Assembly: GCA_009103225.1 (NCBI GenBank)
Contig: RHPI01001037.1
Span: 729,537 to 793,536 of the forward strand
Reading direction: 5' to 3'
Origin: Chlorokybus atmophyticus
Taxonomy: Eukaryota > Plantae > Mesostigma and Chlorokybus algae
DNA length: 64,000 bases
Position 1 is the stretch's first letter, and each line of letters begins with the position of its first letter. A program made the position numbers and the translations under genes. Positions 4,494-64,000 of the stretch are shown here, piece by piece. Below the pieces are notes generated by a model, which made no database searches, was not told where the DNA came from, and saw only the letters and a list, made by a program, of their open reading frames with translations.

Positions 4494-6179
4494 TTATGCG
4501 CGACGAACTCCCACGCCATCCTTTGCTCTTCCAACCATCTTGAAAACACTTCCCGCACCTCTCATGAGCGCCTCCTTGAAGCTCTTCACTTGCACACCCT
4601 TATTGCAGCTCTCATGGTCATTTGCATGTGCTCCCACGTGCTCACTCTCGGCAACGTCCTGCACACCACCACCACCATGCTTCTCCTTCTTGTCCTTGCT
4701 GATGCCAACGCCTCCTTTGGCTCCCACGGGCTCCAGAACTGCACCTTCAGCCTTCTTAACACCACCAGCAACCTCCACACGTGGAATCACTCCACCACTC
4801 GCATGTGACACGCTATTCGTCACCTTCTCTTGAGCTCCCGCTCCCTTATGAGTAACAGGCTCGACCTTGGCCTTCTTCTTCATCTTCTTCACAACCGGTG
4901 CTGACTTGGACACCTCCACCTTGGTCTTCTTGTGCATCTCCGCACCCTTGACCTCCTTAATGATGTAGAGCCCTCCAACGTTGATGCCAACCAACTCTGT
5001 GACACCACGCAGCACTACCCTTCCTATGTCCCCACTAAACACTGTCACAGCACCAACTCTCGCCGCGATGCGCACAGAGAATAGGCTAACCTCTAGCCCT
5101 GATACATACAAAACCTCTCTCAATAACACTTGCCTCGTCCTTCCTCCAACCTGGGACAGGATTTTGGCTTCTCCTACACCAACCGCGAACACCTCCGTCT
5201 TGCCGAACTTCACCTTCATAGGTTTCTCCAAGACCTTGTACTTCGCCAACTTCTCACGATCACCCGTCATATGCCTCGTGCAACCCGATTCCAGCACCCA
5301 ACCATCTGCCTCACCATCCGTTGTTGCATGAAAGGCAATAGGCGTTTCTCGAACACGTCCCGTTATGGCATGATGCTTCTCTCCACCACGCTCTTCTTCG
5401 TGCTGCTTCCTCATCGAGCAATGCACCCTGATGTGGCCCTTCTTCCCGCAATAGTAGCAGACCCTGTCACTCCTTGACGCTCCTCTACCACCACCACTAG
5501 AACCGCCACCATCACCACTGAAACGCCCAGACCCATGCTGAAAACGATCAGTACCTCTTCCTGAAGTCGCTGAGAAAGCCAATGCCTCTGGGCCTTCCTC
5601 ATGCTTTTTCGCCAGCCTCGACTCCACCTGCAGCAATCTTGGAACCACCTCGTCCACCGTGGATTCTGCCTCCAAGCCCTCCAAGACTGTGATCACCGTG
5701 TCATACTCTTCAGGCAACCCGGACAGTACTTGCCACATTAACTCGGACTCTTTCACCTCATAGCCAACGCCTTGAGGGTCCTTCTGCACCTCTCGTGCAC
5801 GCGACACATACTTGGTAAGAGGCTCCGCTGCGCCTTGCTTCTTTAACCCAGCGAGCTCTCTCTTCAGCTGCACCTTCCTCGCGCTATTCTTCGCCTTGAA
5901 GTGCGATGCCAATTTCTCCCAAGCTTCTCGTGCAGTCTTGCAGCCATCCACCAACACCAAGTGATGATCCTTCACGTTGAGACCGATCAGGGCAAGCGCT
6001 CTCCCACTTTGCTGCTTAAACACCAAACTCTGCCTTGTAGACATAGGGTCAGCCTCCTCCGGGTCCACCCACTCCCACAAGTCTTTGTGTACCAGCAACA
6101 TCTTCATGCGCACGCTCCATGTGTTGTAGTTGTCCACGTCCAAAGGCTCCACAGTCACCTTGTCGTAGTTGGTTGCCAT
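4494..6179 (-). CDS. Copia gag-protease polyprotein (561 aa) lacking pol
   Basis: LDVDNYNTWSVRMKMLL (Copia gag N-terminus), EPLTKYVSRARE / LSGLPEEYD (gag core), zinc knuckle CYYCGKKGHIRVHC, protease motif WVLESGCTRHM, GGLYII, then a K/G/V-rich tail and stop. Confidence 0.9.
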   Translation of the reverse strand: MATNYDKVTVEPLDVDNYNTWSVRMKMLLVHKDLWEWVDPEEADPMSTRQSLVFKQQSGRALALIGLNVKDHHLVLVDGCKTAREAWEKLASHFKAKNSARKVQLKRELAGLKKQGAAEPLTKYVSRAREVQKDPQGVGYEVKESELMWQVLSGLPEEYDTVITVLEGLEAESTVDEVVPRLLQVESRLAKKHEEGPEALAFSATSGRGTDRFQHGSGRFSGDGGGSSGGGRGASRSDRVCYYCGKKGHIRVHCSMRKQHEEERGGEKHHAITGRVRETPIAFHATTDGEADGWVLESGCTRHMTGDREKLAKYKVLEKPMKVKFGKTEVFAVGVGEAKILSQVGGRTRQVLLREVLYVSGLEVSLFSVRIAARVGAVTVFSGDIGRVVLRGVTELVGINVGGLYIIKEVKGAEMHKKTKVEVSKSAPVVKKMKKKAKVEPVTHKGAGAQEKVTNSVSHASGGVIPRVEVAGGVKKAEGAVLEPVGAKGGVGISKDKKEKHGGGGVQDVAESEHVGAHANDHESCNKGVQVKSFKEALMRGAGSVFKMVGRAKDGVGVRRA

Positions 6180-55963: not shown

Positions 55964-57319
55964 GAGAGTGTGCTGCTCGCAGGCAAACACACTACTTGAC
56001 AGCCTGGGCCAGCCTCCGTGGGCCTAATCTGGCCTGGCCTGGCCTGGGCTTACCTAAGCGTAGCCCTCGCACAGGTTTTCCTGTTACGTCCCCAACACCT
56101 CGGTAGTCCTAAACCTTTGAGACACGCGGCGCAGCCTGCCGCTGACGCCGTCAATATCGAGGAGACACCCACCACCGCCGCCGCCGCTGCCGCCCCTACC
56201 CGGAAAGGTGGTGCAGACATGCCGACGTCGATGGATCCACCGACGTTACACGTCGACGTCGGCACAAAGCTTTCCACTGCTGCAACTTGCCCGCAAGCCT
56301 TGTACAAACAATGCGCAACGGAAATGCACATGCATAGAGGCATGCACAGTCAGCATGCACAGTGACATAGCGCATACCAACCACACTATGGTAAAGTAAC
56401 CACCGGGTTCATTCACTACCTGCAAGCATGTACATGCATATGCGTTCACCTGCCCACAGGGCCGATGCAGTCAGTTTTGTACAAAGCGGCAGTAGTGGTA
56501 ACGACAACAGACCGGCAGGATTCCTCCCTCTGCGCCCTCCTCTGTCTTCTCCACCACCACACCGCCCTTCCCCCTCCCTCTCCTCTGTCTCCCACCCTCT
56601 GCTGTTGTTGCGCCCCCTGGCGACGTAACCCTCGCGGCTCAGTGCCAACATCAGCACTGCAGTGCGCAGGGGTCTCTGGTTGCTGGCTGGTTAGGCCTAG
56701 GCGGTGGGGTTGGGTGGTGGGGTTGGGTTGCTTCATCCTCCGCACGGGCAGGCTGCTTTACCATGCAGTCTGCTCCCCGTGTTGCTGTTTCAGTGCAGTG
56801 GATTGCAGTGCAGCGGGTTGTCGTGTCGTGCTTGTGCCCAACATGGGCTACCAAGACTATACAGACATGCTTGGACCTCTAGTATACACCGAGCCAAAGG
56901 AGCATCACGATCATGCTGTTGGCATATGTATATTATCCGGCTGGCCTCATTGTTGCGAGCGAGCGTATTGCGTGTTTTTGCATGGGTGGCACAGTTTACG
57001 CCAAACCGCTATGTTGCGAATAGTCAAGGCACAAATATACAAACGCTCTCGCTGGAGTCAGTTGACTCCTCACCTTGGGCCATGGTAATGCTGTCGCGCA
57101 ACAGATTCGACTGCCTGTGTCCGGTTCTAGTTTTTTTTGCAATTGTTTGCCACTTTGCAACAGCATCATGACCACTCACACAGCCATGTAGGCCCGTACT
57201 CACATGTGAGACTAACTCAACAGCACGTCAACAGCAATGCGGCAACAATGACCACTTCATTTCCAGCACACACAACATAGTAATACAGGCAAAACATCAC
57301 ATGCGACCAACCTGTCGAG

Positions 57320-60300
57320 CTACACCATGGCTACGACAAGAGCAACACATGCCATCAGCACATGTACTGGACTGAACACAAAGCCAGCAGCAGCGGCATT
57401 GGGGCGCAGAGGTAGTGCCAGAGGCTGGGTGCACTCGTCGCCATTGAACACAACATTGACGGGGTTCTGCGCCTTTTGACCTTTTGGCAATGCCACGTAC
57501 ATGCTGAACGAAGCAGAACCTCCACCAGGGATGATACCAATCCCCGCACCGGCGTAGCTGTTCGCATAGAATACGAACGCATTGCCTGGCGTGGTCAGCA
57601 GTGTCAACCAATGCGTAAACGTGTGCACACGTGCTGCAGTAACGTACCGACATCACGTTGAGTGTTGATGCCTGAGCTGTTGATAAACGTCTCTTGCGCA
57701 GCAAACTCCCAGGCCAGCAGCCAGTGAGATATCTGAGACACCTGCTGGTTGTGGATGGTGATCTGCGCTTGGTACAATGTGTCCCACTCTTTCAACACGT
57801 GGAATTCAATCCGTGTCAAACAGCCACGAGCCACCTGCAGTTACACCACCATGTTCATGTTCTGCATGTTATCACATGCACAAGCCATGGTCTCAGACAG
57901 TGTGCATGCCAAAATATGTTGCATTGTTGCAATTGATGCCCACATCTTCTGGCTCAGCTGCGGCAATGGCTCCAAAGCCAGTTGCAATGCCACTTGCTGC
58001 AGTTGGAGCCGCGTTTCCATTTGAGTCCACGCATGCAGCTTGGCCACATGGACACAGTGCGCACTTTCCTGATCCTTGCGCATAGTATGCTGCACCTGCG
58101 ATTTCAGTGCTGCAAGAGCCTCATTACACCACACACAAGCCGTGTGAACGTGGCTGTTGATGACTACCATACCGGATGCAGCTACGCAGCAGGTGGGGAT
58201 GATGGAATACTGCGCCGTGGATTGGCAGCATTGCGAGTATGACCCTGCAGAATGCAACACACTTATATCAACACAACCGCTGTACAGCTCATCACTGCTG
58301 ACAAGCTTTGGGGTGAAGGGGTTCTACCATATTGCGCTGCACTGCGTCAAGCGCCAAATCTATGCATGCATGCATCATGATAACACACCCGTAGCTTGTG
58401 TCCAGTTGAGGGTGGGACCGTTTGAATCCCACACTCGAAACAGACGAGGAGGGTCAACCTGCTGGGGAGCAGTGCACACAATTTCTGGCATGGAAACACG
58501 CAAGTCTTGCATTGGGAGTGCGGTGCCCAGACGTCCCCATGCCACCGACGGAAGCCCCTGCCACAGAGCGAGATGCCAATGATGCCACCAGCTTTGAGAC
58601 AGTAGCGACAATGTTAGACAACAGTAAGCTCACCACAGTGGCGCCAAATGCAGAAGTGCCATCATCGCCGGTTGTCTGCGGGCTGATGTACCCATTGCGC
58701 CTGCTCACAGATTCATGCTTTGACTCAACAAGACATGTGCGCAAAAGTTTTACACTGTACTGCGGAGTCGAGCTGTGAGAATGCACTCACAGGGTGTTGT
58801 CTCGAAGGATTGGATTGGTGCTGCAGCTGTCCGCAATGTTGAGGTTGCTGTAGTCTGCTGCTGCTGGTGCGAGGCTGCAGTTGCCTACAATATGCATATG
58901 CTGGTGTGCAAAGCTTCAGCAGTGTTTCAACAAAACAGGTAAAGTATGGCCAGACACCAAATCATACCTTTTGTTGTGGATGCATCAAAGGCATTCCAGA
59001 CCGACCACATGAACCTGGTTGTTGGAATCAACTATAACCCCTTGCATGCAGGCGCATGCGCGTACACGCACACATCACATTGACAAACGAGAAGGTCATT
59101 GAGTGAATGCACATTCTGTCATTAGCGGCAAACACTCACTCTCCATCAGGCCAATGCCACGAGACCTCCCATGGGTCAAGGCCACGATATCGTTGCTGGT
59201 TTTGCAGCAGGAACTGCACGTTGAAGCCGGACAAGTACGCACTGGTAATGTCAATATCCAACCGTACGTCGCATGTGTCGTTGAATGCTGCAACATTATT
59301 GGGCTGAGTGCAGAGCAGTTGTAACAATGGAGGGCGTGAGAAAAAGAGCGTGGTTAACTGCCGCATAGCCCATATGAAAGCTACAAGTACCTGAAGTGCT
59401 GTTAACATCAGGAAACTGCAGTTCAACCTCCTGGCAACAGATAGCAAGAGAGTCGTCTGCATGGCGGGGTTGAAGTTATAAGGAGTGCGCGCATGTGTGC
59501 GTGTGCGTGTGCGTGCGCGCATGGATGCCTGTGGCAGAGCTTGCAACTGCAACCATACTGCATGCATGACGGCTGCTTGCAACAAACCTGTTGTGACAGT
59601 CATGCCAGTGCCTTTTAATGCTGGGCACTGCCACCGCACTTCAAAATCATCACATGTCTGTGACTGCAACCCAGATGCACGGACCACATGTTTGTCAGCT
59701 AAGGTTGGCATCATCAGCGCAGTACTATGGGTAGCACCTGCAGGCTGTTGAGACATACACCTCCGCGGTCAAGTGAGCACTTGTATGTTGCGTTGAAGAC
59801 AGTTTCAGTATATGGTTGTTTGTCTCTGCTCACCAACAAGAGAAGCTTAGGTGAAGCATTAGTGGTCAGCACGCCAAGCCAAGTCAATCGCCAACACTGG
59901 CCATCATAGCAAAAGGAATCACGCCTTGATGCTTTGACAACAACATAACTCCAATGTGCAACGTGTGGCGTAACAGCACATGCAAGACGTGTAGCTCACG
60001 CAATTCGGCGACACTGGATGTCAACAGGAGCGTTTTGGCCACAAGGCGGGCTTTGAAGTGCAGTCAGTAGCTCAAGGTCTCCCACCGCATCAGGTTTGTC
60101 ATTCGACTGCCATACTGTCCATCCATCATCTGCATGCAAGAAGGCTCAGTGTCTTGTGCGCGGGCCCAAACCTACGTGCTTCTTGTAAAGTTAGAGTCAG
60201 TCAAGAAGACATACTTGGCAGTGCTTGTGTTCGTCCTGGACACAGCACACCAGGACCATCCATGGTAAGGCTCGTGGGCATGGCGGTGCTTGAATTGTCT

Positions 60301-62177
60301 AGAGGAGACATAGTCCCTTGCAACGCAACGAACACCTGTACATGAGCAAGTACGACTTAGTCGAAGGCACACACACACACAACAACTCATGTATTGTCCG
60401 AAGGGTCCGGGTGCATCACTCGCAACACCGCTATCAAGCACAAGGTCATGTGTAGGTAAACAACTACATCCACAAGTACGCTATCATCAACTGCTAGTGT
60501 GCAACTACAACTCCAGGCACAGCCAATGAACACAATAAACGCAAGCAGCGGTATGCTTACGGACATTGACATTGTGCGGTGGTAATGCCTCTGACACTGT
60601 GTCCAGGGTACATTACCTGATACTTGGACTGATCGCCGACGGCATCGATGTAGGTTTTGATGCCCCCAGAATACAGTGGTGTTATCTGCACTTGAGGAAC
60701 TGTTAAACACCAGTTGTATGTCAGCACAAGACGTGATGCACTGGGCTACTTGGACTTTTCTAGCAGTTGCACCTTTTGTTGGTGGCTGCGGTGTCAAGGC
60801 GCCATTCGACACCGTATCTACACTCTCGTTGGCTTGAAACCGCATATACACCTAATGCAAAGGGAGGTTGTTGTACAGGAAGTAAACAACACAGCAAAGT
60901 GGATTGCAATTTTGCAGAAGAGAACGGTCCCATTGTTTTTGTCACATACCTGCCAGTCAGTCAGCGTGCGATTACCGGTATTTGTCAGTATGACTGCGGA
61001 GTCGAAGGTACATGGCGACCCTGCGAATGCGGCGATGTTGCAAGGGTAGTAGCCGCCTTCTACAACAACCTGTGCAAAACCCAAATTGTTGTTTGCGAAA
61101 TTGCTGTTCATGCTCAGTTCTTCGCCAACAGTGGTGAGTACCTGTTGTTTGTGGAACTGGTACTGCACAGCCACACCGTTGCAGCTGAAGTTGCCAAGGT
61201 ACTGGTAGACGTTGGAAGACAAGATTGATGCTGCAAGGATTTTTGTGCAATCAGCAACAGTGTTTGCAACCTTAGGCCGACCGACTGTAGACGATGTTCA
61301 CACAACACTTTCTACAATGCAATGCTCAATGCCGACAGCATGCATGGACAACTGACAGTAAGCCATGCAGATGTGGCCAAGATTGCAGGATGTGGTTGCT
61401 GCATACTTCCATGCAAGCACGATCATAGCCCAGCTACACTTACGAGTGCTGTCCTGGTTGCCGTTGCATTCATAGCGAACCTCAAAGTCATCACACACTG
61501 ATGGCTGCCTTGCATTGAAGCACTCGCCACCTTTCTGCACGACAAGACGACAAACACGGCACCATTGACGTTGCAACTCTTACAAGGTTCTGACTCTCCA
61601 TATGGCATATCGCTATTAACGCTCACCGTGTAGTCGCATACGTAGCTGTCCTTAAACTGAGTTTCGTTCCAATTCGTTTGATCGGATATCCTCCGGCACT
61701 GGATGCCAATTGGTTTCTCTCCATCGCAAACCTGCAACAGTGGTTGTAAGTTGGCTGTACCGAGCAACCTGCAACGCCGACTGATTACACCCACATTGGG
61801 TTGCCCTATCTCAAGCTCCAGGTCTCCAATACCAGCTGGTGTGTCTTGGCTCATCCATGGTGTCCAATACGTGTTGGAAGCAGTACACCCTATTTCAAAC
61901 ACATGGCAGCAAATGACGCAACAACAGCAATCGTCAACACCGCCATAGTTGAAGGGCATCATGCAACCATGAACTTCGTTGCAAGTACGCATCAAGCATG
62001 CGTGCCTGCAATTATGCCACAAAGCATGCGACACTTGTTTGTTTGAGTTGAGGCTGGAAATAGTGGTTCAGTATTTGACATATATGTAGTGCAAACGAAA
62101 CCTGCTGACTGCGCTGGCGAACTTGGCAACACAAAGCAGATAAGCAGTATGACGGCTAAAGTAAGCAGCTCCATCAT
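57320..62177 (-). CDS. COBRA-like (COBL7-11 type) secreted GPI-anchored protein containing two WxxW domains, multi-exon
   Basis: Signal peptide MMELLTLAVILLICFVLPSS; WxxW-1; SCNGVAVQY...TFDSAVILTNTGNRTLTDWQV...FQANE (COBL7-type CBM-like); WxxW-2; QNQQRYRGLDPWEVSWHWPDGE; PEIVCTAPQQVDP; PTCCVAAS; PVNVVFNGDECTQP..LP and hydrophobic tail VLMACVALVVAMV*. Confidence 0.85.
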
Positions 62178-64000
62178 GCGTGCATGGCGCAGCAGGCACA
62201 AAGCAGGTACAGCTTCGGTCAGCCGCTGTTTGCAAAGGCTTACAAGCAGCCCAGAAGCACCTTAGCAAGCTAATCTTTAGGCAAACAGCTGTTGTGGGTT
62301 GCTCAGGCACCACCAGCTGGCAACAAAGCAATTGATGCTGAGAAGCTACTGTCCAGCGGCTGTGACGCCGGTAGCCTCGGACAGAGCCTCGGACTGCACG
62401 AACGGGCACAGGCATATGCCGCAGCATTGCGTACGTTACATTGCTTGCAATGCGCTTGCAGCAGCAACAAGTGGAATTTTCAGCTACCGAGCTTAGCCAC
62501 TTGCACATGCTTACCTCGCCCACGCAGGCCTAGCTCAACATTGCTGCACAGACAAATCACATCAATGCGCGACGCTCAGCAAGCATGCGCACTGCGGCGC
62601 AGCGCAGTCAGAGCTCAGTGCGACGCTCTGCTCCAAGCGTTGCATGCAATTGCGCTTTTTGCCACTGCATTATGAGCCGTCCGATGCACGTACTTTTGGA
62701 CGGCTTGCGTTCGGACGGCATGGATCTGCCAGATAGCCGGCAACGCCCAGCGCCACGCTGGCACAGTGATTTCTGGCAGAAGTGCCGCCAGCGTAATCTG
62801 ACAACGAGAATCACGCAATACCACGGCATAATCACGTTCTAGTTATGCATAATGCACGCTCTCCGCCGCTGGTCAGCGTGACGCGGTTGAGATACGGCTG
62901 GCCAGTAGCCTACTGGCAGTAGGCCATTCTTGCACACTGCTTCAGTGACGGTGCTTGTTTGCCACCAACAGGCGTGGCTTCAGGCCAACAACCGTCGCCG
63001 CCGTCGCCTCCGCCTTCGCCGTGGAAGTTGCCATCGCAGCCGTAGGGCGGATCCACTGCATGTGGCCGAACCAGACCTGCTTACCTTTGCCAGGCGTAGC
63101 TACTCGGTTGCTGACTGCTTTGCAGACAATTGCTGAGACAGAGCAGGATAGCAGTGTGATTATCGAGGCGAGATCCTGGGCTGGGCTGGGCAGGAGTTTA
63201 TTGTGAAATTGGCCCAATTGCGTGCGCGATGGCAAGTGGGCGCAAGAGGCTGCTCGTGCGCACGGCCGCAGCTTCCGCGCTGCAGCTGGTAGCTACGGCC
63301 ATTTGGTTCCTCGGGTCTGTATGCGGCTGGAGGTTGGACCGGGTTTGGCCGCAGCTGGAGTGGCAGTTTGAGGGTTATAGTTTCAGGTAAGCCACCATTG
63401 GTGTCATCTCCGTCGGCTGCGTGGAGCACACCGTCGCAGATTCCACACATGTTTGTTTTTATCAAAGCTTGTTGCTCGTAGTAGCTTTCTTGTAGTCACA
63501 TGCAAAAGTGCAGTAGAACACAGTTGCTTCTTTCTGCTATGTGATATCTCACGTAAGGTTGAGTCAGACAGAAATGCAGTGCCTGCTTTGTGTGTGAATT
63601 GTTTAGCAGCTTTGTTCGAGAAGTTGAGAGTTGCAAAGCACGGTTTGAACAGCTGCATAGGCATTTTCATTTCTCCAGGTTGAGCACAACAATCTGGCAC
63701 GTCAGCTGGGGATCCGGATGACATGCACAAACAGTTACATCAGTGCATGACGTTGCAGGTCAGAGTGGTGACGTGCGGAACTTGCCTAGTCTTATGTTTC
63801 TCCCAATGTACTTGTCAGTCTGCATGCGTTGTACCTGCACATGCGTGTTACAGCAGGGTTGTATGCTTGTATGTTCCTACTGTACATACATGTGGTTACA
63901 TGGACGATTAACCGGGTGCGTTGTCAGTATGCTAGCATTTCAAACAGGTGGTTGAACCGCTAGCATAATTACATTGAGACGCATCGCTTCAGCTTCAAAT

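Follow-up and report, generated by a model that had tools for sequence, protein, structure and literature searches.

Does a single gene in a streptophyte alga join mucin-type WxxW modules to a COBRA-like cell-wall protein? The question is raised by the minus strand of a 64,000-nt window of Chlorokybus atmophyticus (the whole stretch of DNA analysed here: assembly GCA_009103225.1, contig RHPI01001037.1, positions 729,537 to 793,536), where a sequence-only reading had proposed such a fusion at 57320-62177. In land plants, COBRA proteins are important to the orderly deposition of cellulose, and their working and origin are poorly known. We find that the gene is real and expressed, and that it is probably a selectively maintained gene encoding an 804-amino-acid (aa) secreted and divergent COBRA-like protein, probably anchored by glycosylphosphatidylinositol (GPI), into which CysD (WxxW) modules have been inserted. 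The genome, at first taken as apparently chlorophyte, is that of a streptophyte, and matches of 100% and about 93-95% to a 2021 multi-strain RNA study fit this placement. A 2021 paper presents RNA-seq of cryptic Chlorokybus species and their gelatinous cell packets (PMC8611356), and the alga, which carries CESA/CSLD-like genes, is surrounded by a thin wall and an extensive sheath (PMC10762512).

The gene runs on the minus strand from an ATG at 62177 to a stop codon at 57322-57320 and comprises 22 exons of 47-266 nt, separated by 21 introns of 62-281 nt that have GT..AG borders in 21 of 21 cases, with a coding sequence of 2415 nt for 804 aa. This structure comes from four public sequencing runs (X1-X4) compared with positions 57200-62300 of the window. 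Contigs of X1, which is RNA from the same organism, match the window at 100% and skip short stretches ending in CT..AC on the plus strand, equivalent to GT..AG on the minus strand. The longer contigs of X2 and X4, both from one 2021 study, are about 93-95% alike to the window and show the same skips. Those of X3 are identical to the window yet unspliced, one of them spanning 58102-58426 across an intron, and this run was taken as genomic DNA of the same strain, that is, as a DNA control. Because the stretches skipped in X1, X2 and X4 have GT..AG borders on the minus strand, the locus is transcribed from that strand and spliced. Exon joints were refined to canonical GT..AG borders that keep the frame open, and at five ambiguous joints the intron lengths were taken from the letters between both sides of each joint. 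Joins that had been guessed from the letters alone, such as CDYT/KGGEC, coincide with those in the spliced RNA contigs, and the motifs quoted with them all recur in the minus-strand translation of 57000-62600 at the places given for them.

The WxxW exons do not belong to a separate gene: a single 2400-nt contig of X4, from a related strain, extends from exon 2 through the stop codon into the 3′ untranslated region and carries WxxW and COBRA-like exons on one transcript, as the sequence-only reading had supposed. Along this contig, the record positions of any two listed pieces lie exactly as far apart as the exons between them add up to (235 letters, for instance, for exons 11-13 together with five unplaced letters, and 162 for exons 7 plus 8), so no exon is missing or extra. 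The frame stays open over all 21 joints, with no stop and no second start between the modules. A tblastn search of the 64-kb window with the protein model found no second copy of the gene. Inside intron 12 lies a CA/CG-rich simple repeat (59487-59527), where the X1 contigs appear cut.

The translated product divides into the parts below, and their order, from signal peptide to GPI-type tail, is the one first read from the sequence.

57320..62177, minus strand: whole coding region, from the joints of spliced contigs of X1 (identical) and X2/X4 (relatives), with borders refined.
62102..62177, minus strand: exon 1, predicted signal peptide, aa 1-25; first ATG of the open frame, ending ...AQSA, with a phase-1 donor.
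61444..61889, minus strand: WxxW/CysD module 1, exons 2-4, aa 27-122; PF13330 match on exon 4, paralogue of module 2, phase-1 intron borders.
61866-61855, 61827-61810 and 61495-61472, minus strand: module 1 motifs WTPW (aa 34-37), GDLELE and CDDFEVRY, respectively.
60215..61230, minus strand: middle domain, exons 5-9, aa 124-286, 4 Cys; placed by exon joints, phase-1 intron borders.
59588..60129, minus strand: WxxW/CysD module 2, exons 10-12, aa 288-384; PF13330 match on exon 10, phase-1 intron borders.
60121-60110, 60082-60065 and 59654-59631, minus strand: module 2 motifs WTVW (aa 290-293), GDLELL and CDDFEVRW, respectively.
59391..59456, minus strand: exon 13, short Cys-Cys linker, aa 386-406; joints 59287/59391 and 59456/59588.
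58634..59287, minus strand: COBRA-like N module, exons 14-17, aa about 408-525; from Pfam matches on exon 14.
57944..58557, minus strand: Cys-rich central region, exons 18-20, aa 526-654, 9 Cys; read from the sequence.
58197-58174, minus strand: PTCCVAAS.
58063-58043, minus strand: CALCPCG (CxxCxCG).
57431..57834, minus strand: CBM2-like/COB_C module, exon 21 and the first part of exon 22, aa 655-768; from Pfam matches on exon 21.
57454-57431, minus strand: VVFNGDEC, the end of the CBM2-like/COB_C module.
57323..57400, minus strand: GPI-type C-terminal signal, with candidate omega site N779-A-A, a short spacer and the hydrophobic end ...VLMACVALVVAMV, no charged residue following.

The two WxxW/CysD modules had been placed at ~61890-61460 and ~60140-59630, and they were found as exons 2-4 (61889-61444, with splice joints 61729/61793 and 61534/61627) and exons 10-12 (60129-59588). 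Aligned over 86 residues, they score 216 against 27.9 +/- 5.5 for shuffles (z=34), a result that marks them as clear paralogues. W-T-x-W, D-x-P, GDLEL, IQCRRI, GG-x-C-x-N and CDDFEVR-x-x-C occur in both copies, and six cysteines stand at aligned positions in the two modules. The profile that the modules match is Mucin2_WxxW (PF13330), whose Pfam description includes a minimum of six conserved cysteines: exon 10 scores 20.6 bits (E 7.6e-4) at profile positions 1-42 and exon 4 scores 16.6 bits (E 0.013) at positions 64-88, a rough sum of 37 bits where the cut-off is 22.4 bits. The same model among 24,736 was therefore matched twice, at opposite profile ends, in the right order and on homologous repeats, and it matched none of the other pieces among the approximately 40 scanned, many of them junk-frame. 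Given two collinear matches on paralogous repeats and none elsewhere, we accept the WxxW assignment. A TSP1 domain, tried in its place, gave a 13-bit match on exon 2 only, with no CSxxCG, and was rejected.

Each module is interrupted by two introns that are differently placed in the two copies, after GQPN and CDYT in module 1 and after CRRIA and NSLQ in module 2. These differing positions show that the duplication is not recent, and imply intron gain, loss or sliding since it took place.

The earlier description of the modules as mucin-type holds for the domain family and does not extend to the rest of the protein, which has no Pro/Thr/Ser (PTS)-rich tract and no VWD. Proline, threonine and serine together reach at most 37.5% in any 40-aa window and 21% overall, and the pieces scanned gave no Pfam match to VWD, C8 or TIL. 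The protein is no mucin, although it bears a module of the mucin family.

How the modules are set into the gene is visible in the intron phases. Exons 2, 5, 10 and 13 all start in phase 1, so that the first WxxW module, the middle domain and the second WxxW module each form a symmetric 1-1 cassette, the arrangement expected for extracellular modules gained by exon shuffling; phase-1 cassettes are a textbook signature of that process. For the middle domain, a CBM2-like label as in the N-terminal part of COBL7-11 had been suggested, and it found no support: DUF7507 at E 0.012 was the one Pfam match, a scan of exons 5-9 giving nothing at E<=10, a word search was blank, and self-alignment with both CBM2-like modules of the protein was not significant (z 0.4-0.5).

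The part of the protein behind these cassettes has a COBRA-like layout. In the N module, WEVSWHWPDGE-FMWSVW crosses exons 14/15, and exon 14 matches COBRA (PF04833) at profile positions 3-28 (15.0 bits) and CBM_2 at positions 5-41 (14.1 bits). Exon 21 reaches 28.4 bits (E 2.2e-6) against CBM_2 (PF00553), above the 24-bit cut-off, over profile positions 2-46 of 101, that is, for the first half of the module only. The same exon matches COB_C (PF25079) at 21.8 bits (E 2e-4, profile positions 76-117 of 209) and COBRA at 18.3 bits (profile positions 1-41), each with a cut-off of 27 bits. Only four solved structures matched exon 21, all of them family-2 carbohydrate-binding modules (CBMs) at E 0.3-0.6, and in the ESM Atlas the nearest named clusters, at 0.84-0.86, belong to CBM_2 and COB_C/COBRA; we treat this as a lead only. 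Over the approximately 40 pieces scanned, junk-frame ones included, no piece outside the expected exons has a Pfam match to WxxW, COBRA, COB_C or CBM_2.

The protein closes with N779-A-A-A-A-G, 20-25 aa from its end, and a hydrophobic end of about 13-20 residues, inside which it stops. An omega site and a hydrophobic tail, both read as sequence features only, make GPI anchoring probable. The hallmarks described for COBRA proteins are a targeting signal, a carbohydrate-binding module, a CCVS region and a hydrophobic C-terminus with an omega site (PMC10143436); features corresponding to all four can be recognized here, with the motif as CCVA.

At the opposite end, aa 1-15 show the feature of a secretion signal, with a Kyte-Doolittle hydropathy of up to 3.0 (by inspection). 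Exon 1, intron 1 and the splice to exon 2 we infer from three features of exon 1: it opens with the first ATG of its frame, its product reads as a textbook signal peptide, and its canonical GT donor is in phase 1, as is the acceptor at the start of exon 2. In X2 and X4 the transcripts go on beyond the 5′ side of exon 2 in sequence that does not resemble the window (loose ends 61891 and 61875), and the 30 letters of X2 there read as a different signal-peptide end. The signal-peptide exon appears to evolve much faster than the rest of the gene.

The coding sequence is constrained between strains. Of the differences that set X2/X4 apart from the window, the 40 best supported comprise 27 synonymous and 13 non-synonymous ones; most replacements fall in the C-terminal signal. 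Indels in that signal are multiples of 3, and the remaining ones listed either compensate each other or sit at the stop codon. This pattern points to purifying selection on the gene in several strains or species. X1 also holds a second contig of 289 nt over the last exon (57319-57570), with 21 differences (about 8%) that are the same as in X2; it could represent a second allele, a paralogue or a strain mix.

Relatives were sought with exon-sized queries. The longest exon, exon 22 (87 aa), run exhaustively with phmmer against 1.84 billion representatives, returned five low-complexity Gly/Ala-type matches and no orthologue; in hindsight it is a poor query that holds the fast-evolving tail. Word searches with a piece of the first WxxW module, the COBRA-N exon and a piece of the middle domain were blank, and since they considered only candidates of 0.55-1.75x the length of these short queries, full-length relatives were beyond their reach. 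Metagenome scans with exon 21 and a piece of the second WxxW module matched patterns and confirmed no relative, and the ESM Atlas gave no usable match for exon 10. A literature search found no description that combines WxxW or CysD with COBRA, and as far as that search showed, the architecture is undescribed.

Several results weigh against a COBRA-like protein with mucin-family modules, and they bear on different parts of it. For the core, they raise the alternative of a secreted wall protein made of CBM2-type modules that is no true COBRA member, its weak COBRA and COB_C matches reflecting a shared CBM2-like fold. The COBRA-specific Pfam models remain below their cut-offs on every single exon; exon 21 scores higher for generic CBM_2 than for COB_C or COBRA, and the nearest Atlas clusters are bacterial CBM_2; exons 18-20 and 22, the COBRA-specific parts, give no family match, COB_C included; and the motif is CCVA, not CCVS. 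It is on account of the sub-threshold models, the unmatched exons and the CCVA motif that we call the protein COBRA-like and divergent. That it lies outside the family altogether is nevertheless unlikely, given that COB_C falls on the C-terminal module only and COBRA at the start of the N module, which is the family's own order, that the overall layout is a hallmark of COBRA proteins, as are PTCCV, CxxCxCG and an FNGDEC immediately followed by a GPI-type signal, and that the COBRA-like family has been reported as founded at Streptophyta (PMC10037820). For the repeats, the corresponding possibility is a lineage-specific six-cysteine module convergent with animal CysD/WxxW. Neither PF13330 match reaches the cut-off alone, no solved structure of a mucin CysD was matched with exon 10 or even with a small two-repeat profile as queries, a PTS tract is missing, and CysD reportedly arises in mucins only with Bilateria (PMC4948705). 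Yet the two matches to one model are independent of each other and collinear on homologous repeats, and both copies retain WTxW, D-x-P, GD-x-E, CR and C-D-[FY]-x-V-R, which together make convergence highly unlikely.

The two ends of the protein and its unity can be questioned in the same way. The shortness of the hydrophobic end would suit a C-terminal transmembrane helix, or plain secretion in place of a GPI anchor, but the chain stops within the hydrophobic stretch and leaves no residues for the cytosol, and the small residues N-A-A-A-A-G stand at the distance from the end seen in GPI signals and COBRA proteins; we consider this alternative quite unlikely. The signal-peptide exon is without RNA coverage from the same organism, and exon 1 of the relatives is too diverged to align with the window. 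No relative emerged for any exon searched, although these blanks mean little with queries of exon size. A chimera of a neighbouring WxxW gene and a COBRA-like gene would draw on the fact that X1 covers the gene in parts only, with no contig beyond 61474; it is largely refuted, and extremely improbable, in view of the one X4 contig from exon 2 into the 3′ untranslated region, its agreement with the summed exon lengths and the frame that runs uninterrupted through every joint.

We therefore favour a divergent COBRA-like protein with inserted CysD modules. In this protein, the C-terminal part would hold the COBRA layout of a CBM2-like N module, a Cys-rich CCV region, a CBM2-like (COB_C) module with FNGDEC, an omega site and a hydrophobic tail; ahead of this core would stand three cassettes (WxxW/CysD, a domain of ~160 aa and WxxW/CysD), each bounded in phase 1 as if added by exon shuffling. 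The data show how the gene is built, that it is transcribed and constrained, that its repeats are homologous and that parts of it match known families, whereas GPI anchoring, ligand binding and a cross-linking role are inferred. The lipid anchor would deliver the protein to the outer face of the plasma membrane, with possible release into the wall, where the CBM2-like modules may hold a beta-glucan such as cellulose. The compact six-cysteine WxxW modules could then make protein-protein or protein-glycan contacts, as CysD is thought to do between mucin chains. The outcome would be a thin wall tied to the gelatinous sheath that holds the Chlorokybus cell packets.

A bolder extension, which we offer tentatively and regard as doubtful, is that CysD/WxxW is not a bilaterian invention and is either far older or has moved between kingdoms. 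Two copies would have been shuffled as phase-1 cassettes into one of the deepest COBRA-like proteins, yielding a lipid-anchored linker between wall glucan and gel matrix. Such a linker would be the algal equivalent of mucin-type cross-linking, present in no described COBRA protein. If the favoured reading of the protein holds, a divergent, expressed member from the streptophyte lineage most distant from land plants would provide a deep outgroup for the COBRA family, and exon shuffling of extracellular modules would be seen outside animals. WxxW/CysD, treated as bilaterian in the mucin literature (PMC4948705), would extend to the green lineage, and the protein would be a concrete candidate for tying the thin wall of Chlorokybus to the gelatinous sheath of its cell packets.

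Two other open frames stand out in the window, both on the minus strand. The frame at 4494-6179 (561 aa) matches copia-type gag (PF14223, E 1e-29), a Pol beta-barrel domain and DUF4219, which identify it by homology as part of a long terminal repeat (LTR) retrotransposon. An unusually long open stretch of 499 aa at 42286-43785 matches the Adaptin N-terminal region (PF01602, E 3e-56) and is probably one large exon of a gene for an AP-complex large subunit.

Among known systems, the C-terminal module resembles bacterial CBM_2 (PF00553; for example the CBM2a of Cex, PDB 1EXG), of whose 101 profile positions exon 21 matches the first 46, whereas the second half, in exon 22, has no CBM_2 match and the host is a eukaryotic GPI-type protein instead of a glycoside hydrolase. 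With COBRA and COBL proteins (PF04833 plus PF25079) the algal protein has in common its signal peptide, the W-x-W-x-W type strand in a CBM2-like module, CCV and CxxCxCG in a Cys-rich region, a C-terminal beta module closed by FNGD-x-C, and a hydrophobic tail preceded by an omega site. Compared with those proteins, it is about 350 aa longer N-terminally, where it holds two WxxW/CysD modules and the extra domain, has CCVA for CCVS, and is so divergent that its exon-wise scores fall below cut-off. Its gene has 21 introns, against 2-7 exons in the COBL genes of Liriodendron chinense (PMC10143436). From the gel-forming mucins the protein differs in its algal host, in lacking a PTS tract, VWD, C8 and TIL, and in the fusion of its modules to a COBRA-like core and a GPI signal. 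The mucin CysD has ten cysteines, where the algal modules have six. Like the CysD (PF13330) of MUC2, MUC5AC and MUC5B, however, the algal modules are ~90 aa long, occur in two copies interspersed between other domains, and carry W-T-x-W, D-x-P-x3-GD-x-E, C-x-x-P-x-x-I-x-CR and C-D-[FY]-x-V-R-x-x-C with six aligned cysteines.

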